Positions 21,201-52,204 of a stretch of DNA of 64,000 nucleotides are shown piece by piece. Location of the stretch: positions 1 through 64,000 of the forward strand of contig FLMG01001375.1 in the NCBI GenBank assembly GCA_900088475.1. Reading direction: 5' to 3'. Made by a program: the position numbers and the translations under genes. Numbering within the stretch: position 1 is the first letter of the stretch; each line of letters opens with the position of its first letter. The notes under the pieces are model-generated. The model was not told the DNA's origin, did no database searches, and worked only from the letters and a program-made list of their open reading frames with translations. This DNA is from Hyphochytrium catenoides (Eukaryota; Protista; Hyphochytriomycota).

Positions 21201-21576
21201 GAGAAAGAGACAGAGACAAAGAGAGGCAGAGAGAGAGAGAGCATGCATAAGAAAAGAGCGAAAGCTTAAATAAGAAAAGAAGGGTTAAGCATAGCAAAAG
21301 GAAAGACACTACCAAGCAATCAGCTCAGAGAAAGTTCCCAAGAAAGAGAGAGAGTTTCGCCATGAGGATTTGACCGTAGAGAGTGAGAGCAGTGGAAGAG
21401 AGACCTCCTCTCCTCGAACGGAGACAAGATCTGAGACTAATCACAAAGGAACTCACCTCAAGCCGCTCTGTCCTGCCTTCATAGTGGCGAGTTCCGCACT
21501 CCTCACAGACGAGCTCTCCAAGATCATTCTCACTGAAGCAATCTATGGCCCGGCAGGTGAAGCAGATCAGAGGCAT
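18297..21576 (-). CDS. TAF1B: RNA polymerase I initiation factor Rrn7/TAF1B, multi-exon
   Basis: N-terminal zinc ribbon MPLICFTCRAIDCFSENDLGELVCEECGT. Cyclin-fold segment LPVLLAILFYCCRSLRLPIVPSFLLSFVLNGELPYF resembles the Rrn7 LxICYLAxxxLRLPVxxxD...GxIPY motif. C-terminal YSLLLDHCARLL. Confidence 0.75.
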
Positions 21577-21685
21577 CGAGCGGAACAGCCGTCGACGAGA
21601 CGGACACCTAAAAGCCCGTCCAGCGATTCTCACGCAGCTCGCGAGCTATTGAGACCAGAGATCTGGACAGGTAGAAACAATCGCT

Positions 21686-24600
21686 ATGGGATTCGAGGGA
21701 GAGGGAAGGTGGGAGAAGGTCGGCCAGGCCATTGACCTGACTGAAGATGGCAAGCAGTAGAGCTGCTGTGTCAGGTGATGCGCGAAGGGAAGAGCAGCTG
21801 AGACGGCGATGAGAAGCTTCAGAATTGATAAGCCTAGCCGCTAACGGCTGGAGGTCATGTTGCCTCTCGTCTCTTTCTTGCTCTTATTTCTCTGTCTCCA
21901 CCTCCATCATCTCGACCTCCTCTCCTGAGGCTGGCTGCTCCGTAGGGTGCTTTCTCTCTCTTCAGTCTCACATCTTTCCTTTCTCTCTCGTATCACCAGC
22001 GCCTCCTCTCGCCTCTCTTTGCTCTCCTTGGCTCCCATCCTCCCTCAAGGCGGCACTCAGCCTCGGCCTGGGTGATCTCAGGGCAAACTCGTGCCAGCTA
22101 CACTTTGTCCCTCTGCAGAAGCATGGCGAAGCGCCTGACGAGCACGAGGTACAAGGATGCAAGATGCTCTGCTCTGCCTCGTTGTCGTTGCTGTTTCTCT
22201 CTCTCTGTCTCTCTCTTTCTTTGTGGCTGTCCACTTCTTGTCCCTTACCCCTTCTGATGGCACCTATTGCGTGCGTTCATTCTTATCTCATTCCCTCTGC
22301 TCTCATAGGCTCATTCGTCTTCTATATACCTTTCACTGTCCTCTCTCTCTCTCCCTGCTTTCTCTCTCTTTCTCTCCCTCTACCTGTCCCTTGACAATGT
22401 CTCCTCGTGTCGGGGATTATCTTTCCCGCGCTGATACCTCCTTTTCCTGTCTCCTCTGGACCATTGAAGCGTCAACTATGGCCGAGCTTTGCCAAGAGCT
22501 GTTCGTCCTGCGCATTGCCCTCTCTACGTTCCTAGCTCTTCTCTCCTAGACGGGAAATTTGCTCAAAGCAGAGCCGCGGCCTCCTCCTGGGCTGCACTGG
22601 CAACCTTGAACCAGTTAAAGGAGAAGTATGCCCAGAGACCTAGTGGAAAGCTTGGCGGCATTTCATCCATCATTCCATCCTCTCGAGGGAAGCAGGCAGC
22701 CTCTTCCAATCAGCTGTCGTCTCTTGAAAGCTTTGCTCTGCGTCTCTCTCTCCTCTCTGAACCACGAGTTGGGGGCTCTCTCTCTTCACATGCTGTGGAA
22801 CACGTTCTTGGCAGCTTCAAAGCTGTCATAGAAGAAAAAGACCCTGAAGATGTTCCGTTTAATCTGCTTCTGGATCTTCTGAAGGTGCGCTTAAGCTCCC
22901 GGTCCCGGTCCCTAAAGCACGATCATTGCCTTTCTCCCCCTTCCCCTTACTTACTCTTCCCTCTCCTGCTTTCACATCTTCTCCCATTGCCCTTCGCCGG
23001 CACCGACCAATCGGTGTCTCCTCTTGCTCTGCGTGTGCTACCTACTCACTCTCATTCGTGGTTACCTCCACTCCCCTCCAAGAATGGCTAGGCCTCTTAA
23101 GCTGGCTGGTGGCTCATCCTCTGACTGTTATTTTAGGTCTCTCTTCAGACTGACCAGAAGATATTTGGGGAAGCATTAACGCAAGATCTTCTTGCGCTTT
23201 GTTCATCCTCTCTTGGTGGCGACTCCTCCCTGAAGGGAACGGCAGAGCTGTTTCTCATCCTCTCAAGAGCACAAGAAAGCTTCTCTGCGGAACTCATTCA
23301 TAAATCCTACGATATCTTTGTAGCCTCCCTGAAGGAGGTAGGAATTGAATGAACAGAGGAGATTGAGACATAAGGTTGAAAGGGTGAGGGCCTGTGGGGA
23401 GAAACAGAAAGGCGAAAGGATAGTCATAGATTCTCTGCTTGTAATGGTCTGACACTACTGTTTCGAAGTGGCATACGACTCTCGTCGTTGCTGATATCTA
23501 CTGCCATTGACCTGACCTTCTCTTCACAAGGTCTCAGTCCATCACCTCTGTTTCCGTTCATTTAAATCAGACGCCAGAGGAGCAGAAGAGAGAGCAGGAG
23601 GAGCTAATTGCCCAGGCCTTCACCAGAGCTTTTGAACGCCTGCCCCGCGAAGGGACCCAAGTGCATCAGCTGGCGCCAGTTGAGAAGATCCTCAACGACC
23701 TGGAGACTCTATTTCCTGCATCTGCTCTGCTTCCACCCTCTAGCGCTTACCCTCTTTACCAGGCAGCAGTAAGGGCGTCCACAAATCCATTCCTTGCAGA
23801 AGGACACGAAGGTTAGTCAGCCGACAAGTTATCTATTTTCAGCTATCGCACTGGTTCACGATCTAGACTTACCTGATGCCTCAACAAGACGTTGCAGAAA
23901 CGGATCCGATGCTTCTTCTGAAGTGTTTGGATAAGGGAAAGCCCATTGCCGATATCGCCCCCACTCTACTGATGGAAAGAGTTATGGGCTTGTTAGCACG
24001 AGTGACCCAACGGTTGCGGGTACCGAAAGAGAAGAGAGAAGAGGCTCTTCTGGAGGTCATCTCTCCACTACTTTCAAATGCAGAAAGTGATTCCGAACGA
24101 GTCATGCTTCTTCAACAGAGCCTTACTACCTTCGACCTGACCTTCTCTTCCCCATTAGCGGATCTTCTTCTCTATGCTTTGCCTGGCTCTATTGGTTGTT
24201 CTCGCACCTTTGTTGCCGAGCTGGAAAAGGCGTTTTCATGGTCTCAGAAGCGCACCACAGACGGCTTCAATGACTCGGCTGGCCGGACATTTGCCCTCAT
24301 TCCTCGTGTCGCAACGCTAGGGGAAAGACGGAGATTGTATGCGGAGGTAAGCTTGCATCGCCCCACACGTGCGTTGGAAGTGCACGTTAAATGGCAGGAC
24401 TGACCATAATGAATACAGGGCTGCCATCGACAATATCTAGGTGACAAGGGGCAAGACAACCCTCTCCCATCTGCGTCCCCTTTGGACAATCAGATTCTCG
24501 CAGCTGCTGCCTGCGCATATTTCAGCGATACACTTAGGCTTCTAAGAGAAAAGTATATTTGGCATGGGAAGGTGGACACAGAGGTACAGAGTTCACCAGA

Positions 24601-27497: not shown

Positions 27498-29289
27498 CTA
27501 CTTCCCACCCACATCCGCAGCGTCAGCAGGTGTCTTTGTTTCGGTGGCTCTCCACATCAGCCAGCTACCAAGCGAACGGTAAGGCTTCCATGAAGAGGAT
27601 AAAGAAACCATTTCCGCGGCGTCCGGAAGAGAAGAAAGAGAGTAGAAGATCTTCATCCCGCGCTTGACGCCAAGATCTCCAACAGGAAGAATATCTAGCC
27701 GTCCCAAGTGGAAGAGCAAGAACATGTCCACACTGCACATGAAAATTAAAAGCATGGCGCTTAGAGTAATATATACGCTAAGACTGACAGAAAGCGAAAA
27801 GGTCCTACCACTCCCATGAGAAGAGAGCGATGCAGCAGCAACACATAAAATGGCGGCGGGAAACAGGAGAGGAATATCTGCAACAACCGTTCCATCTTTC
27901 CCAGCAGGCAACCAGGTAAAAATCGACACACCTCCATGGGCCAATGCCCCTGACTTTGATCAGATTATCGGCGATGTCTTCGTTGTTCATTGTCTTCAGT
28001 TTCTTCTCATCCAAAGTCCTAATACGAGTGAGAGCTTTCAGTTTTCCAACGTCGAACGAGACCTAACAGAACAACCACTCGTATGACGGACACTGGGCGG
28101 CTCGAAGGCTTATGAAAAAGGTTCAGAGACAATATCATAGCCAGACAGAGGATCCTACCCATCAGCAAACTTTTCGGAGAGGTCGATGATGGACCGTGCC
28201 TTCGCCATTGACAATCCTAGAGTCCGTAACTCCTCTGGAGTCTTTTTTATCACCTAACCACCACCCAGCGCAATAAGCAAGAGCATAATCCAGCTGGCAA
28301 AGAAGTAAGGAAAGGAAGAACCAACTGCCAAAATAAAGAAGAAGAGGACCACTATAATATATGACTGTGTGGTTTAGGTTAGGAATGGCGCAGAAGGTAG
28401 AGGTGAAGCGAGGAAACTCGTGGCTACGACCCTACTTGCTGTGGAGTAGGATAACCGGTAGATCCAAAGTGCTTTAGAAAGCGCTGCAGTATTGCAAAGG
28501 CTGCAGAACCAGCAAGCTGCTGGTAGACTATCGCTCTCACAAGTGCTTCATATGCAGAGAGGTTCGCCGTAGTTTGGGCGTTCACAACAAACGGGGGAAG
28601 TCCATGCTTGTCCAGTAAAGGACCAAAGCCAGCCTTCCGCTTCAGAGAGAGTAGAGCAAACATTAGGGGATGCTACGGAATGGGTGATGGTCGATGTAAA
28701 ACGGACCAGAAGAGATAGAGGAAATGGAACTCATGGGGGGAATGCAGACCGACAAAGGAATTGCTTGCTTCAAAGTTCTTCTTACCAGTTGCTCTTGCGC
28801 TTTTTCAGCATGAGTGGCGTCCCAGGACTCTCCATTGTCTTGGCCCCGCGTATCTAGTACAGCCACGGTCTTCTTGACTTTCCTCTTTACCTGCTTCTTG
28901 ACGGTCTTCTTCACCTTTCCCGATTCTCTCTTTTCCTCTTCTTCAACTTTAATTACTTCTTCTACCTCCCTCGTGATGAACTTGCGCCGTCCACGAGGAG
29001 TTTTCTCCTTCTTATCGTTTGTTACCTCTTCCTCTTCTTTGACTTTCCTGATCGCCAATGTCTGCGCTTGTATGCGCGTTGACCTGCGTCTGCCTTCTAC
29101 TACCTGTAGGCCATGCTCTACTTCTGCTACATTCTTATCACTCGTTGACTCCAAAGCCTGTACTTCCTTTCTTCTTTTTCTTGGGGGCTCTAACGCCGTA
29201 CTAGAGAGGGCTAGGCTGGTCCCGTGCTGAAGGGACGGAGAAGTCGCTAGTGTAGGTGAAGAACTTCGAGGACGTGTTGAAATGACCAT
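27498..29289 (-). CDS. DNA-3-methyladenine glycosylase (AlkA/Mag1, HhH-GPD family) with basic N-terminal extension
   Basis: YEALVRAIVYQQLAGSAA, PTPQQV, LRTLGLSMAKARSIIDL, HhH motif LIKVRGIGPW, VDMFLLFHLGRLDILPVGDLGV, WKPYRS. Confidence 0.9.
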
Positions 29290-29962
29290 TGGAACTCTTT
29301 CCTCAAACTGCCACAATTGATGCCTCTAAAGCCGGCATCAGCAAGAGTTAGAGGTAGATAAGATTATTGAGATTAGCAAGAGCAGTCTACTCTGTCACGT
29401 ACCCAAAGATTGGCTCTGTTAAAGTGCCTTAATGCAAGCCGCTGAGCCCTGTGTGAGAGCCAGAGGGTCATTATTACAAGATAGTGAGAAACTTTGCTTC
29501 GACCGCAGCATCAAGCAGTCTCTGAAATATTTGTGAGGCAAAAAGATACTGGAGACACACCTAAGATAGAAGCTGTCCTCCAGATTCTTGTCTGCTTTGA
29601 CCCTTCTGAGCTTGGGAGTGCAACTACTGTCGCTCTAGTTGTCCTTCACTAGCCTTCTACCTGCTTGTATATCTCCCCACGTAGCCTGCCAGCTTGTCAT
29701 TTTGGCTCATTTTCATGCTCTGTCGGCCCTTCTTGCACCCATAAGCACTGTTCTCTGCAATATCTTGAAGGCCGAACACGGATCAGAACCCTCATGATCA
29801 TGCCCTTTCGGAGGGAAGATGATGGCGCCCCTGTTCGCGCCACACCAGACGGCAATTCAGTAATCAAAAACTAATAACTTGTTGGTGATTAATATGAACA
29901 TGATCTATATCTAGCGGTCAGCGGCTCTTCTTCACTCGCTAGCAGACCAACACTCTCTAAGA

Positions 29963-30676
29963 TTCTCATGATGGAACCTCTAATTCTACGGCCATTGGCA
30001 GGACACAGGACACAGACCGACTGATCTCCAGCTTGATCTCCCGACTGAGATGAGAGTTCAGCAGCTGACAATAATGCACTTTCGATCTCTGTGTCATCCT
30101 GTCAGTCATCCACTTTCCCTTTGCAGGTACTTGCGGACTGCTGCCCTGACGGCTTAGACTAAGGAAACGATGAGGCTATCAGAACCAGAGTTCCGAGTGG
30201 CCTCGATCAGAGCCAGCATTCAGGAATGGATAGACAAACTCGATGGCGAAGTTCCTGGTGGCATGACTGTTCGTTCATGAGAGGCATCTTCCTGAAGAGA
30301 AGCCGGCCTCAGAAGCGACGAGCAGAGGGGCAGCCTTGAGGGGCTGCCTTGAGAAACTACTCCTCAGGAAAATGCCTCTTATGAACGAACAGCCATGCCA
30401 GGAACTTCACCATGGAGTATATTCATTTCTTGGAGAAGCGAGCAACTGTGTTGGCTCTGATTGAATTGGAACTCTGGTTCTGATAGGCCCATCGCTCTCT
30501 TAGTCTAAGCCGTCAGGGCAGCGATCCGAAAGTAAAGGGAAAGTGATGAAAGACAGAATAACACAGAGATCGAACGTGGAACCCCATAGTTATTATTGCC
30601 AGCTGCTGAACTCTCTGTTGTCTGGAAATTAGGGGTCTGTGTCCTGACAATGGCCGTAGAACTTCCATCATGAGAA
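29963..30676. repeat. Long imperfect inverted repeat (~340-bp arms, ~60-nt loop); candidate hairpin RNA locus
   Basis: At least six collinear reverse-complementary blocks, including a perfect 24-bp pair (30140-30163 / 30499-30522) and a perfect 19-bp pair (30176-30194 / 30468-30486). Confidence 0.9.
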
Positions 30677-31111
30677 ATTTGGAGGAGAGCATTTGCTGCA
30701 GGGAGTGGTCTGAGCTCTATCTGGGAACAAGGGTGAGCCGCACAAATTGGAAGGGAAAGCAATGCTTTTCTGAGTCTGATTTAGTCGCTGCAGCGTCGGG
30801 AAGTTGCTACGGCGTTGTATGCTGTTGAGCACTCAGTGTCTTAAGGGGCCAAACGGGTAGGCAAATCTTCAACGTGTAATCTTGATACTCTTAATGGGCC
30901 AAACCCAGTCGTGATTTTTGGTACTCCTTTGTGAAAACTTTGTCTCAATCGCTATCTACAGAGGTGGTGCCTGTTGAGCCAGCGCTCGTGAAGAATCGAG
31001 AGGTGGGAAATGGATCTCCCAGGAGGTGATAATCGGGTAGGGTTCATAGATTGTACATTAATACGCAGGCGGAGACTACGAATAGCAGAGTGAGCTCCGA
31101 CTTCGTATGGC

Positions 31112-32842
31112 CTAGCTTGGAGTCCATAGGGAAGAACTCCCATCAAGTCTACTTTCTACTAGCTTGCGCCACGACCTGTGCAGCTCAGTCACCACTTCCC
31201 GGGCCTGGAGCTGGTGGGCAAAAACGGCCGCATTATTGGCGACAGACCATCTGGAAACTTGCATCGTGTCTCATTCAACTCACCGCTTCAATAGCTTTGC
31301 CATTAAAGGCGAACTGGTTCGCAGGCTTCCCGTCTGGGATCTTATAGTCTCGGAACCAGTCGTGGATCGCCTTCACCTTCCCAGGACAGTGCCTTTCCAG
31401 ATCTGATACGTCTGATTGTTGTCGTTGAAGATATTGTAAAAGCCCCGAGAGAAAGGTTAAAGATGGATTCAAGCGACAGGCAGGAAGAAAAACATGAGTA
31501 AACCTTGAAGCTTCGCAGCTAGAGGATCATCCATTCCAATGGCAAGAAGCTTCCAATCCGTTTCTCCGTCATCTATCAGTGCCAGAGCGCCCAGAAGTTT
31601 AACCTAATGGCCACGTCATTAGCTCCCGTTAGCTCACCCTTCACTTATGTCGGCCTACGTGTCGTGACCACCTCCGATTCGGGTCTGTGCCTGCCCTAGC
31701 AAAGGGAGAACTAAGATAGGTGGGCTTCTCTTACCTGGTAGACCTCTCCTACGTGCCGAATTTGGTCTCCTATCTCACATACATCAACCGGGTCATTATC
31801 CCCTATTAAGGAATAGGGTTGGTCAGTGATCCTCAAACAACTCCCAGTACACAGATGTTTGTCCACACAAACCTTTGCATCCCGTGGCTTTGTCCACTTC
31901 CTCCGGGTCTTCCCACGTCTGAGGCAAACAGCCGTAGTTGACTATAGACTTAATGGGATAATATCTAATAAGGAAAATATAATCCAGAAAGCAAGGAGTT
32001 ATTGAGAGAAGAGTCAATGGTCCTCAGTTGCGACCGATGGCGCTTGTTAAGGATAACTAGCGATCGCTGAGAAAAGTGGTAGAAAGGATAGGTGTCCCAA
32101 GACTGAAGTCTCTTACCTTAGCTTGCCGGCCTTGGTGTCCTGCTTTATGGGGTTGAACTCTTCTGTTGTTGCCACCTCATATTTTGCGGTGCCCCTACCG
32201 TGGCAAAACGGATAGATGGACTCTTAGCTGGCACTCTACTCCGCCCAGTTTTGCTGAAGCAATTCTTTTCAGATCTCTCCACTTGCCTTCAGATAAACCT
32301 ACCCAGTTCCCCCTAGGACTGCACTCCCGTCCTCCTCCTAAGAGCTCTTTTCCTACGCAGTCCAGATACCTTATCTCTGGTAGGCTGGCATTGCTTACGG
32401 ACTTACCCTCTAGGTATCTCGTTAACATAGTTAAAAACAAGGCTTTTTCTTATGTCATCTCGGCAAAGGGGAATGTGATGCCAGGGAGAAATTTTGTTTC
32501 CTTTGCTATCATGAAAGAACACTCGGAAGCTTGTCTCGCCCTCTCTGCCTACCGTCTTGCTCTTTAGCTATGGTTAAGAACCCACTTAGACGACAACAAA
32601 GAAGGAAGTCCAGCATCAGTGAAGGAGAGCTAGCCGGCTACGGGCCAACAGGAAGAACTAGATCAGCACGGAGAGCGAGACACGTAACCAAAGCAGACTC
32701 ACAATTTGCGCTGATCCTGCACGTTGGAGGAAGTGCAACACTGGTTAGGCCCCTTGTCGAATGGGAAGTGAGACGGGTTCTTACCACTGAGACCACGGAC
32801 TCTAGCCAGAGGGAGCTCGCGTAATCGCTTTGTGAGTGTCAT
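31112..32842 (-). CDS. Family I soluble inorganic pyrophosphatase, multi-exon, possible organellar presequence
   Basis: [103 protein letters not shown]. Arg/Leu-rich N-terminus. Confidence 0.93.
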
Positions 32843-44763: not shown

Positions 44764-46770
44764 TTAGGTGATTCCTTGGCTAAGAGTTCCATAAAGGGCA
44801 AGCCAGCAGTGGTAGGTGTCCGTAAGTTGAAGAAGAGCCATGGTGAATGACCTTTCATCTAACTCTAGGCCATCGGTTGACATCTCATCCTCGTGCTCTT
44901 GTGTTTCACTGGCCATCGGGGAGGATTTTGGAGCTGCGTCTTCGCTGTGCCGAATCTTTCCATATTCGACACTATGCATAACCAGGACGGGGGACCACGA
45001 AGAACCAAGAAAGTGAGGCAAGATAAGGGAGAGTCAGGACGATTGGATAGAAAAGGAAAAACAGGGACAACCGGAGCAAATAGGGGTGGCTGAAAGAGAG
45101 CCAACGAGCTCAATGATGGGTCTACTTTCTGAGGTGCCTGGCTGACCTTGTCCCTTCTTCGTCATGATCGCCAGCCTCTCCTTCTCCTCCTTCACTTTCA
45201 CTCTCTTCCATATGCGAGTGATCTCGCATGGCCTGACTGAGGGCGTACTTCTTCGCTGTACATGGGGAAGCTTTGTAAGAAGTAGGTTCGGCGATAGGAG
45301 AAGCATCATCTGGGCAATAGAGCACTACGGATAATATCTGACGAAAGGGCCAGGCTGCTCTTCCCCATACGCCGTGTAGACGGCACAGTGACAGCAGGGA
45401 GAAGAAGAGGAAGCTGTGGCATATTTTGAGAGAGAGACTACGGTAAGAGGAGAAGGTCGACGAGGCACTGACATGAGGTGTGGAGTCGGTGCCCTGGACT
45501 CTGCGTGTGAACCGTCGAGACTGCTGAGGCTGCTGGCGTGTCGTGTTCGGCACTGGTGCTAGCCAGAGTCTCACTCAACCGCATAAAGTCCACATCAATA
45601 GGCATAGGCTGAAAATTAGCTGAGGTGTGGGATAGAAAGGTAATAAAGGTCAGTGAGTGAGAGGGGATGAACGCCAGCAGTTAGCGGAATAGGACAGAGA
45701 AGGCAAGGGCAATGAGAGGATAGAGGTTGCCAGCCCTAAGATGAGTCGCTCGGCTGAAGACGGTCGAGCAATCCTGTTGGATGCCTTCAGGTAGACATGG
45801 ACATAAGATGCTAGTTCGATGAGTTGGAAGTTGCCGAGAGAGAAGATCGAGTAGATGAGTCGATAGTCAAGAGCATGAGAGAGGCGAAACACAGCAAGCT
45901 GAAGAGAGAGAGAAGAATAGACCATACTTGCGTAAGAGGAAGGACTTTGGTTCCTCGCTGCCAGGCTTGGGACTTCAGTCATCAGTGGAGGCCCTGCCTC
46001 CTTCCTCCTCCGATTGTACCCAATCTTGGTCATCGCATGCTGGAACTCGACCCGAACCTGACAACGAGAGGACATGTCAGATTATTATTGAGCGCAGGAC
46101 AAGGGGTACGCCCTTCAAAGAAAGAGAAAGCTGGAAAAAGTCATAGGAAAGAAAGGCCAAGTCCCCGCAGAGAAAGAATAGACTGAGAGGAGTGTGCATC
46201 CCGAGGGCCAAGCAATGCAAGCGCAAGGAGAAGGGGAGAAAAGCTCTACCTGGAATTCCTCGTCATCGAACATCTGGCCCAGCCGATGCTGCGAAGACAG
46301 ACAGAGAGAGAGAGAGAGAGAGAGAGAGNNNNNNNNNNNNNNNNNNNNNNNNNNNNNNNNNNNNNNNNNNNNNNAGACGAAGAGAGGAAGGGGACTCAGG
46401 AGCAGAGGTACAAAATAGGAGAATAGGAGTGAAGAGAGACAGAAGGAGGCAGAGGAGAGACAGAGAGAGAGAGCTTCTCAGCTTAGAGCTGCTGAGCAGA
46501 AGCCCGTCTCCAGGACTTACCGGGCGTGGCCGACTCTCCATCCTGCTTCTAGCTTCAGTTGAGATGCAGACACTTCCCCCTTCAGCCCATCCCTCAGCTG
46601 TCAGCGAGCTGTACGTCCCAGCTTGTCCGTTAGGAAGGTATGATAGTCCTCCGGGCTGCAAGTAGAGTAGAAGCTTACAGAGTGGTCTCAACAGTGACAA
46701 GTGCTCTCTTTCCCGTCACCGCTGCTGCTGCTGCTGCTGCTGCTGTGTCGCTGGGGACATGGATGGATGC
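44764..46770 (-). CDS. Unknown low-complexity multi-exon protein; model tentative
   Basis: Candidate exons with GT/AG ends (HRLGQMFDDEEFQ|VRVEFQHAMTKIGYNRRRKEAG...; acidic 45122-45310; terminal ...LYGTLSQGIT*). A (CAG)n run lies at ~46721-46745. The region spans an N gap. Confidence 0.35.
46329..46374. other. Assembly gap (N run) within GA microsatellite
   Basis: Run of n characters. Confidence 1.
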
Positions 46771-47448
46771 GAACTCCTGCTAAAGCTTTCTTCCTCCCAC
46801 ACTATGGCTGTTCTTCCCAGCAGATTATCTTCTTGCCTCTCTCCCTCTTCTCTTTCTCTCTCTCTCTCTCTCCCTCTCTCTCTCTCTGTCTCTCTCTCTC
46901 TGTCTCTCTCTCTCTTCCCTCTCTGCAGTAAGATCTCTCTCTCTCCTTTCAAACGGAGCCGTTCTCCTCCACTTTCCCTCCAGTTCTCTCTTCAACCCAT
47001 AAAACTCGTAATTCCAGATACACAGCTATAAACGGCTTTCTCTGAGGAGCTATAATAAGATCAGTATATCTGATATGGGTAAACGTCTGCTAGTGGTCCC
47101 ACAAACGTTGTATTTAGCAGACCCAGCACCCTGTTGATGGCTTTTGACTTTCCCCAAACATGTCTCTCTCCCTCTTTTTTCTGGCTCTCTTCTCCCATCA
47201 TCAGACGTCCAAGCCACGCCTCACGCCTCAACCTATCGGCAGCTTCCTGTCCTTCGATCCTCCTCAATGCCTCGGATCTCTGTCTGTCACTCTCTCACGG
47301 TCTCCATCTCGGCTTCTGAGACCTCCTCCTCGTTCCATCAAGCCTTATCTCTTTGTGGAAAGCCCTTGAGGACCAAACGAGTGTGAGAAAGGAGGCCTCG
47401 ATCTAGGAACTAGCCAAGAAGGAGAGAGAGGGACCTAGCCACCAAGCC

Positions 47449-49120
47449 ATGAACTCAGTGCAGACGCCCCCGGCCCTGTCATCTACTTTCTACGCCTTGG
47501 ACTTTGACGGCGTCCTGGTCGATAGCGCAGCTGAACTAGGAACGGCGGGATGGAAGACCTGTCGGGCACTTTGGCCTTCTAAGAGCTCTCCGTCTTCACC
47601 TTCCAAAGAGCTCATTGAGGACTTTTAGCGTGTTAGACCGGTACTGGAGACTGGGTATGAGAGTAAGGAAACTCCTGCTGAAGGGGAAAGAGTAGAATAG
47701 AGATGACACACTCCTTGTCGGCTCTTGCCATTCCCTAGTCCTCCCTGTGCCAGGAGCCTTCACCTTCGCAGGTCCACTTGCTCAGATTCTTTTGATCTAC
47801 CTTATGCCTACCCTCTCTTCTCACTTGGCTCTGGGTCTACCCACTCTACCCAGTCCGCTACGAAATCCTATCTGCATCAGATAGGCATTGCCGCTCAGAT
47901 CTGTGCCTCTTGCTGTCCCTTCTCCTGTATCACTGGGTCGCAGTCTCTTACTTTCTCCTTAAGAGCAGGCGTTATCTTGATTAAAGCGCTGGAAGAAGGC
48001 TGGAATACTGCCGAGGAACTCATCATTCGCTGGCCAGGACACAGCGATGACTTCTTTCACCGAGCTGGAGTCGGGCGAGAGAGAGTTATCGATCAGTTTG
48101 CGGCGTCACGGTGAGTCTATTAGGCTCTTAATGGGAACGAGACGATAGAGAAAGAAATGGCTGATTAGTCGCAAGCGGGAGACCAAAGGTAAACGTAGGG
48201 AGAAAAGGTGATGAAGGTCGGAAGAGTCCACAGACAGAGAAAGAGAGACAAAGAGAGAGAAAATGGAAGAGAAGAGGGAGAGTTAGGAATAGTGATAGGG
48301 CTTGGGGGATCAATAGGTCAGAATACTGAGGGTGAGAGAAAACGAGTATAAAGTGAAACGCCAAGCGAGTTGAAGCAAACTGTCTCGTGGGGTCTCTGTC
48401 TCTCTCTCCTTCTCTCTCTCTCTCTCTCTCTCTCTACCTCTACCTCCTCTCCCCCTCGCTCTCTTTCTCTCTCCCTCCTTAAACACTCTAGCTTACTTCT
48501 GGCTTTTTCACTATTGCAGAAAGGTCTGGATGGATGAGGATGTGCAGGCCTGGCTCTCTCAACATTCCTTCTATAGTGAAGCCGTCGACGCCGTCAAAGA
48601 TCTCTGCAAGACTGGGATTCCGGTGTATATTATCACAACCAAGGCCAAGGACTTCACGTTGGAGCTCCTTGATCATGCCGGGCTTCTAATTCCAGAAGAC
48701 AGAGTGTTCGGCCTTGGTAGTGGGGCCAAACAGGACGTTATAAGCAGGATCTTCGAGACAGATAAAGCCTTTCAAAGAGCTGTCTTCGTAGAAGACAGAG
48801 TGGAGACCTTAATCAAGGCTAAGCCACTTTTCGAGGAGAGGTTTGACTGTTTGGATCACCAATTTTCTAAGCTACCTTCCTGACGTTCACAACTTGTTCT
48901 CTCTATTTGTCCTTTGTCTGTTTGTCCGCTATATCTCCTTGGAACGTCTCCTATTCGGTTGTGTGCTAGGAGGCTCATTGTGGAACTAGTATTGGCAGAT
49001 TGGGGCTATAACACCGAAGCAGACAGGGAGAGAGCACGACAGAGTGGATGCAAAGTAACAAGCCTTAAGGAGTTCGAGCAGATGTGCGCGAAGCAGCATG
49101 GCATCGGGCAAGCTTCCTGA
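47449..49120 (+). pseudogene. HAD-superfamily hydrolase (cyanobacterial/plant-type) with one in-frame TAG in exon 1; null allele, sequencing error or readthrough
   Basis: YALDFDGVLVDS (HAD motif I), ...IEDF*RVRPVLETGYE, WMDEDVQAWLSQHSFY, IITTK, VFGLGSGAK, FVEDRVETL, LVLADWGYNT. TAG at 47626-47628; all other exons are intact. Confidence 0.7.
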
Positions 49121-51442: not shown

Positions 51443-52049
51443 CTCTCTGTCAGAAGTCTATCACTTAGATCTCTCTTGGTGCCAGTGCTACGATGGGAGA
51501 AACTTCAGAAAGTCTCGGCTGCAAAACACCTGCGGACTGCAGACCCGCAAGAACGGAGACGAACGAATGCGCCAGAAATCTGGCTTTACCGCGATGGTCT
51601 CCACCTTTGACTGGCGGCCACCACTGCGCACTCTCTTCTTTTTCCTCTTTCTATTTTATTTCTCCTTCTGTTTATAGCTCCATGCTGCAGGGCTGCTGAT
51701 GAGGCAGTGAGTGTCGGCAGTCTCTGTTGCTATAACGGGCTAGGAAGGTATGAATATGTTGGTGCTTGTACGAGCAAAGAAGAGATTTGGTCCCGTCAAA
51801 AGATAAAAATATTTTTCTCTCGCCTCGAAGGTGGGACGGGTGATGAATCTCCCTCCTCTTCTTTCTGTTCTTTTTCTCTCCTTTCTCCTTCTTCTTTTCT
51901 TATCCTCTCTCTCTCTCTCTCTTCCTCTCTTCTCTTGCTCTTGTCAATGATGATGGCGCCAAACCTCGACAGTCGTGACTTCCAGCCCTCAGTTTCCTTT
52001 CAGCCCCATACAGAGCCAAAGAAGGGGAGGTGGCAAATGATGCTCTCTT

Positions 52050-52114
52050 TCAGCAAGAGAGACAGATCGATGAGAGAGAAAGGACAGCTGGGAGAGAGAC
52101 ATGCCATTCGCCAG

Positions 52115-52145
<31 letters not shown>

Positions 52146-52168
52146 CGGTATGGGAGAGAGAGAGAGAG

Positions 52169-52204
<36 letters not shown>

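Follow-up and report, generated by a model that had tools for sequence, protein, structure and literature searches.

MicroRNA precursors with long hairpins of several hundred nucleotides are known from Chlamydomonas and from brown algae. In animals, plants and oomycetes, endogenous loci for hairpin RNA (hpRNA) and inverted-repeat siRNAs consist of long imperfect inverted repeats with several hundred nucleotides per arm, which originate from duplicated genes or transposons in genomes encoding Dicer and Argonaute, and which are defined by their small-RNA reads. In maize, Mu killer (Muk) is a natural inverted partial duplication of MuDR (PMC3440606). Cryptons, by comparison, are transposons without terminal inverted repeats, and the CryptonS elements, which have been described as recombinase-only elements of oomycetes and diatoms, carry terminal direct repeats of 5-6 bp, mostly TATGG (Kojima and Jurka 2011, PMC3212892). 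In Phytophthora infestans, small RNAs derived from Cryptons have been observed (PMC3522703). The draft genome of the hyphochytrid Hyphochytrium catenoides was assembled from short reads with Platanus, 1.79% of the assembly was assigned to transposable elements, and the genome paper makes no mention of Cryptons, Dicer or small RNAs (PMC5795050).

Here, we analysed a stretch of 64,000 nucleotides of the H. catenoides assembly (contig FLMG01001375.1, positions 1 to 64,000 of the forward strand; referred to as the window), which harbors a long foldback at positions 29950-30694. We conclude that this foldback is probably an old, single-copy locus at which the 5' end of a CryptonS-type tyrosine-recombinase transposon was partially duplicated in inverted orientation and has since decayed neutrally; it could at most yield anti-transposon small RNAs and is not a microRNA gene. 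It is best filed as a further example of a transposon-derived inverted duplication, a known type, and does not conform to the testable characteristics of a miRNA gene or of a MITE. With this, a candidate miRNA or structured-RNA gene is struck off, and a concrete, checkable origin takes its place.

Among the described systems, Muk is alike in that the terminus of a DNA transposon is duplicated in inverted orientation together with the 5' part of its transposase-type gene, beside a host gene from which read-through could produce a hairpin RNA (PMC3440606). However, the parent of Muk is a DDE Mutator element, whereas that of the foldback is a tyrosine-recombinase Crypton, and Muk gives rise to a hairpin RNA of about 4 kb, while the arms of the foldback measure about 0.35 kb and are 13% diverged, the foldback being the shorter and older of the two. 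The hpRNA and inverted-repeat siRNA loci share with it the long imperfect inverted repeat of several hundred nucleotides per arm, the origin from a duplicated gene or transposon and a genome with Dicer and Argonaute, but they are defined by reads, whereas the foldback is known as a sequence whose tested signs of selection were negative. The precursors of Chlamydomonas and brown algae are comparable in hairpin length; the foldback differs from them in being repeat-derived, in lacking membership in an Rfam family and in residing in a host that is probably not an alga.

Structure and genomic context of the foldback

The foldback at 29950-30694 is real, comprises about 740 bases and consists of 10 collinear inverted-repeat blocks between 29955 and 30684 as identified by a repeat search, which bears out the collinear arms at 29963-30676 that an earlier inspection without database searches (hereafter the sequence-only reading) had proposed. 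Indeed, the perfect 24-mer and the 19-mer noted at that time were recovered, the longest perfect runs being 24, 19 and 16 nt; the first of them is the longest perfect duplex block, located at 30140-30163 on the plus strand and pairing with 30499-30522. The inner stem, previously estimated at about 55 nt, is present and was measured as 44 nt with 89% complementarity (30259-30302 paired with 30357-30400). Folding of both strands, which the same reading had suggested, resulted in structures that are far more stable than those of shuffled sequences (about -230 kcal/mol), i.e. -434.6 kcal/mol for the plus-strand RNA (z -25.6) and -447.9 kcal/mol for the minus-strand RNA (z -29.3).

Within the 64-kb window, the foldback is the sole long inverted repeat that is not of low complexity. 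All other long inverted repeats of the window are GA-rich/CT-rich low-complexity pairs in inverted orientation, 0.2-2 kb apart, at positions 756-1916, 21203-22231, 46284-48465 and 51881-52190.

The two minus-strand genes that had been proposed as neighbors, encoding a pyrophosphatase (PPase) and AlkA, are both found, each by weak exon-level Pfam matches. The downstream neighbor on the minus strand is an HhH-GPD (AlkA-like) glycosylase gene at 27498-29316, for which the match in the exons at 27498-28663 (E 0.0096) is weak and lies below the cut-off, and whose putative first exon ends about 650 nt from the foldback. The upstream neighbor on the minus strand is represented by an inorganic pyrophosphatase exon at 31275-31472 (Pfam E 0.0012). 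As this exon covers profile positions 98-132 of 153, the 3' end of the gene is expected a few hundred nucleotides from the right arm, and read-through from it would produce a minus-strand transcript of the foldback.

The arms belong to a dispersed repeat family

Using the left arm as a query against its own genome, we retrieved the right arm as well as single-arm relatives on contigs C1947, C2088 and C2148; the C1947 copy as a query additionally identified C1677 and an interior-only match on C1619. Single-arm homologues are thus located on C1947, C2088, C2148 and C1677. No inverted partner was found within 1.5-10 kb of the three relatives that were inspected, and the foldback locus is the only one genome-wide at which both orientations occur. 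Two of the relatives, C1947:2-838 and C2148, are about 90% identical over 865 nt including flanking sequence outside the element, probably as two haplotypes or through recent segmental duplication; the Crypton relic of C2148 has an internal deletion.

About 15 genomic sites carry the outermost ~26 nt of the arm. In an alignment of these sites, unrelated flanks switch abruptly to the common sequence TATTCTCCGAAA, followed by TTCTCATGATGG, which reveals a sharp insertion boundary of a multi-copy element with about 15 termini in unrelated surroundings. Eight of the sites are contig ends, which halt 31-44 nt inside the element with identical sequence (C792, C2463, C2536, C3379, C3381, C3393, C3894 and C4455). 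Young, near-identical copies break short-read assemblies in just this way. From this we conclude that the short-read assembly lacks the young members of the family, which also explains why the 3' end of the element and its full length are absent from it.

That contigs break at this same repeat family, in an assembly made from short reads only, could raise the suspicion that the foldback itself is an assembly artefact. However, such an artefact would give a near-perfect palindrome, whereas the arms differ at 13% of positions and by 12 indels, and unique flanks are present on both sides, so that we regard this explanation as extremely unlikely.

The copy number of the arms, a point that the sequence-only reading had put forward for checking, is informative with regard to a mobile foldback element or MITE with terminal inverted repeats of about 350 nt, its own alternative. 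Both outer ends of the foldback consist of the same terminus in inverted orientation, as this alternative predicts. Yet the search yielded multi-copy single arms without an inverted partner within 1.5-10 kb and no second two-armed locus, the arms carry the start of an ORF and not the terminus alone, and the Crypton class lacks terminal inverted repeats, the repeats of CryptonS being direct (PMC3212892). A target-site duplication is not evident at the outer borders either, where the flanks share no direct repeat, a test that is weak since the termini are decayed. Taken together, the alternative of a mobile two-armed element does not hold up and is very unlikely.

The parent element is a CryptonS-type transposon

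The C1947 copy extends over more than 1.1 kb and aligns with sequences on C1619, C4408 and C4545. In tblastx comparisons between the copies one reading frame was favoured, which on C1619 corresponds to an intact ORF of 753 aa. At their inner ends, both arms show homology to the N-terminus of this ORF (NGYINSMVKFLAWL). Another paralogue, with a long open frame of 844 aa and 48% identity to the C1619 protein, is located at C3571:142395-144395. Apart from these two, about 20 broken recombinase fragments are present, and about 23 protein-level matches were obtained genome-wide. A 5'-truncated tail of a non-LTR retrotransposon had also been considered, since the copies share one end and vary in length, and was rejected when the shared end turned out to lie upstream of the recombinase start codon.

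The 753-aa protein had no match in a Pfam scan, and PDB searches yielded no match with the single sequence and chance matches only with a family profile, which is why the protein class was settled by structure. An AlphaFold (AF2) model of the recombinase reached a mean pLDDT of 80, and its best PDB matches in Foldseek were all Cre/Tre (best E 6e-4, probability 1.00), followed by XerA/XerH, Flp and phage-type integrases. In a large protein database 124 homologues were found; those that are named belong to Phytophthora, Lagenidium, Aphanomyces and the diatom Fragilaria, and a small number are annotated as integrase or core-binding-domain (CB-domain) protein. The columns R, K, HxxR (HSxRKG), W (GW) and Y are conserved in 25-26 of the 26 aligned family members. 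Based on these conserved columns and the predicted fold, the repeat family encodes a tyrosine recombinase with a Cre-like fold.

The recombinase-only gene, the multiple copies, the stramenopile host and the homologues in oomycetes and diatoms correspond to the published description of CryptonS elements (PMC3212892), by which the parent family is a CryptonS-type DNA transposon. The family resembles the CryptonS elements of oomycetes and diatoms in its recombinase-only gene, whose C-terminal region is conserved, in its multiple copies and in a sharp boundary with TAT as its first letters; in 12 copies, the 5' boundary begins with TATTC. The foldback itself differs from these elements in having inverted termini, which Cryptons lack. 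An inverted terminus was also sought within 10 kb of the C1947 copy and not found, and the assembly is without any complete young element. The analysis thereby documents a CryptonS-type family in H. catenoides, whose missing young copies matter for estimates of the repeat content (1.79%, PMC5795050).

The intact 753-aa paralogue at C1619:81271-83529 shows the substitutions R221H, H334Q and Y372S at otherwise invariant active-site-type positions. All three are unique to this protein among the 26 aligned members, and the gene lacks the 5' terminal region of the family upstream. With these features, the copy may have been inactivated or domesticated.

Anatomy of the arms

The left arm (29950-30302) is a copy of the CryptonS-type 5' end in sense orientation on the plus strand, as delimited by its homology to C1947:747-1097 and C2088:28941-29232, by the alignment of the termini and by mapping to the C1947 copy and the C1619 gene. 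It begins with a degenerate terminal stretch of 13 nt (29950-29962), continues with 5' non-coding DNA (29963-30169) and ends in an N-terminal coding remnant, which starts with the ATG at 30170 and is frameshifted by a 17-nt deletion. The right arm (30343-30694), sense on the minus strand, is a second copy of the same 5' end, which was identified by the genome search with the C1947 copy (matching 30343-30676) and by alignments to C1947 and C1619. Its coding remnant occupies 30343-30492, with the ATG at 30492-30490, and its 5' non-coding part and terminus reach out to about 30694. The view that the structure contains no convincing ORF holds, but the first ~45-50 codons of a recombinase gene survive within each arm in frameshifted form.

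Between the arms lies a junction or spacer of 40 nt (30303-30342), as the local alignments stop at 30299 on the left and at 30343 on the right; homology to the family was looked for in this spacer by local alignment and not detected. Read directly, the spacer sequence repeats a short piece of the right copy's inner end in direct orientation. The right arm enters the element about 30-45 nt deeper than the left arm, with truncation points at about 353 nt (left) and 385 nt (right). In total, each arm therefore spans about 350-385 nt, made up of a sharp 5' terminus, a non-coding part of about 220 nt and ~45-50 codons from the start of the gene, with the 5' termini pointing outwards and the two gene starts converging across the spacer. 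This corresponds to a build of the Mu killer type, i.e. an inverted partial duplication of terminus and gene start that is found in both arms.

Age, decay and origin of the foldback

Based on pairwise and E-INS-i alignments, the two arms are 87% identical (K2P 0.14) and separated by 12 gap events, a distance not much smaller than that between either arm and the solitary relics (K2P 0.17-0.25). In a quartet composed of the left arm, the right arm, C1947 and C2088, the informative substitutions were distributed 6/5/3, which describes a star, and the private substitutions amounted to 20, 15, 21 and 17. Shared indels, by contrast, support the arms as sisters (5 versus 1 and 1), so that the apparent sisterhood of the arms rests mainly on these indels.

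These data bear on the question of whether the arms go back to one duplication or to two independent convergent insertions of related copies, which were trimmed later by a central deletion. The star-like quartet, in which informative sites place neither arm closer to the other than to C2088 or C1947, and a mild enrichment of arm-arm mismatches at sites that vary among other copies (OR 2.0, p=0.035) are in line with two insertions. However, the shared indels, the arm-arm K2P as the lowest of all and the near-symmetrical truncation points speak against them, and we consider two insertions distinctly unlikely.

With regard to the mode of decay, the private changes of the arms showed no enrichment of transitions in comparison to the relics (transitions:transversions 25:10 versus 23:15, p=0.46). 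Since the private changes are equal in extent to those of relics, which are unable to form a hairpin, the decay of the arms has kept pace with that of solitary copies. The sequence-only reading had pointed to paired blocks alternating with diverged segments, and this pattern is indeed present; it is, however, what a random placement of interruptions predicts, as 45 interruptions placed at random among 223 matches gave mean longest runs of 23, 18 and 15 nt, compared to the observed 24, 19 and 16 nt (P ~0.35-0.39). We read the foldback as having decayed at an apparently neutral rate since its origin.

For the inverted partial duplication that we favor, a single event near the time of the last spread of the family would most likely have made both arms, with a template switch or fold-back repair, or the central deletion of a tail-to-tail pair, as candidate events. 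Afterwards, both arms would have decayed at the neutral rate. The suggestion of an old foldback element, which had been raised beside the hairpin RNA, was hence on the right track insofar as the arms are transposon DNA, and the hairpin potential stands; a miRNA gene or a dedicated hairpin gene is not supported.

RNA potential of the foldback

The genome contains one Piwi-domain (Argonaute) gene with an open frame of 910 aa (E 8e-110) as well as loci with two or three tandem RNase III domains, which look Dicer-like. An RdRP was also sought in the genome and not detected, but the controls were unmatched as well, so that this search carries no weight. A transcript across the locus, arising either from pyrophosphatase read-through on the minus strand or from the convergent 5' regions of the element, would form an imperfect dsRNA of about 300 bp, which the Dicer-like and Argonaute proteins could process to siRNAs matching Crypton 5' ends, in accordance with the Mu killer principle. 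In view of the Crypton small RNAs of P. infestans (PMC3522703), the idea of siRNAs from the foldback is not far-fetched.

With respect to possible targets, a stretch of 23 nt in the right arm (30391-30413, minus strand) matches the 5' coding region of the C1619 recombinase (81361-81383) exactly, and this sequence occurs genome-wide at these two sites only when up to 3 mismatches are allowed. The match slightly exceeds the expectation under neutral decay (P ~0.03 as a rough, informal estimate). No exact 21-mers are shared between the arms and the dispersed (young) copies, and when 1 mismatch is allowed, the C2088 copy has the most matches of any single copy, namely 10 right-arm 21-mers. The remaining targeting capacity of the arms thus appears modest.

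The sequence-only reading had favored an RNA gene on the minus strand that is processed by Dicer, citing a 7:2 excess of mismatches that become G-U pairs on this strand. This bias is gone on a full count, in which 25 of the aligned mismatches are G-U compatible on the minus strand versus 20 on the plus strand (p=0.55); for isolated arm mismatches the numbers are 8 versus 6 (p=0.79), and the MFE structures contain 21 versus 16 G-U pairs. A search of Rfam with both strands returned only sub-threshold matches to MIR861, a generic plant miRNA hairpin (32 and 27.8 bits versus a gathering score of 70), and neither the 24-nt stem nor the terminus motif pair gave a match in metagenome pattern scans. 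The appeal to algal precursors started from a doubtful premise, as no light-harvesting-complex (LHC) gene was found in the genome and the host, H. catenoides, is a heterotroph.

A long-hairpin miRNA precursor on the minus strand, regulating host genes, would be compatible with the hairpin shape, with the slightly higher stability of the minus-strand fold and with the MIR861 match. However, this match stays far below the gathering score on both strands, the G-U bias is not significant, and the arms derive from a multi-copy Crypton-type family, so that the hairpin is not unique and its genome matches are family members only. Together with the relic-like decay, these results leave a dedicated minus-strand RNA gene without support, and a miRNA precursor is highly improbable.

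It is also unlikely that the foldback is a selected, active hairpin locus, i.e. a "Crypton killer" that is transcribed, diced and kept, and whose siRNAs silence the Crypton family or tune the C1619 paralogue. The architecture, with the terminus and the start of a transposase-type gene in inverted orientation as in Mu killer (PMC3440606), argues for such a locus, as do the very stable fold on both strands, the AGO and Dicer-like genes, the 23-nt match to C1619, the 21-mers close to C2088 and the existence of Crypton small RNAs in Phytophthora (PMC3522703); an absent RdRP would make hairpins a main source of dsRNA, although the RdRP search carries no weight. On the other hand, the arms decay like solitary relics, wobble-compatible transitions are not in excess, a G-U strand bias is lacking, the run lengths are as chance predicts, and the young copies are matched by no exact 21-mer. 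Rather unlikely, too, is a hairpin that is formed from the two 5' ends of the transposon, drives its own transcription and gives rise to siRNAs which silence the family or, via the 23-nt match, regulate the catalytically altered C1619 gene. Signs of selection for siRNA output were not seen in the decay rate, the transition:transversion ratio, the G-U strand bias or the run lengths, and the neutrally decayed partial duplication remains our preferred reading.

If small RNAs were made from this duplication, it would represent a silencer of the Mu killer type for a tyrosine-recombinase transposon. To our knowledge, no such silencer has been described. It would also be located in the hyphochytrids, a lineage whose RNA silencing appears unstudied (cf. 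PMC5795050).

Further repeats and reading frames near Crypton copies

On the minus strand of C4408 (L064:1913-3709), an ORF of 598 aa without Pfam match adjoins a broken Crypton fragment. An unrelated repeat of about 440 nt, with at least 50 copies of up to 94% identity, is nested in the Crypton relic on C1947 (L061:1927-2393). Copies or fragments of this repeat are paired in opposite orientation at several loci, among them C4060:16596-17051/17153-17586, C3676:444-611/620-775 and C733:1035-1205/1276-1358, and these side-by-side arrangements suggest that inverted repeat pairs may be frequent in this genome.
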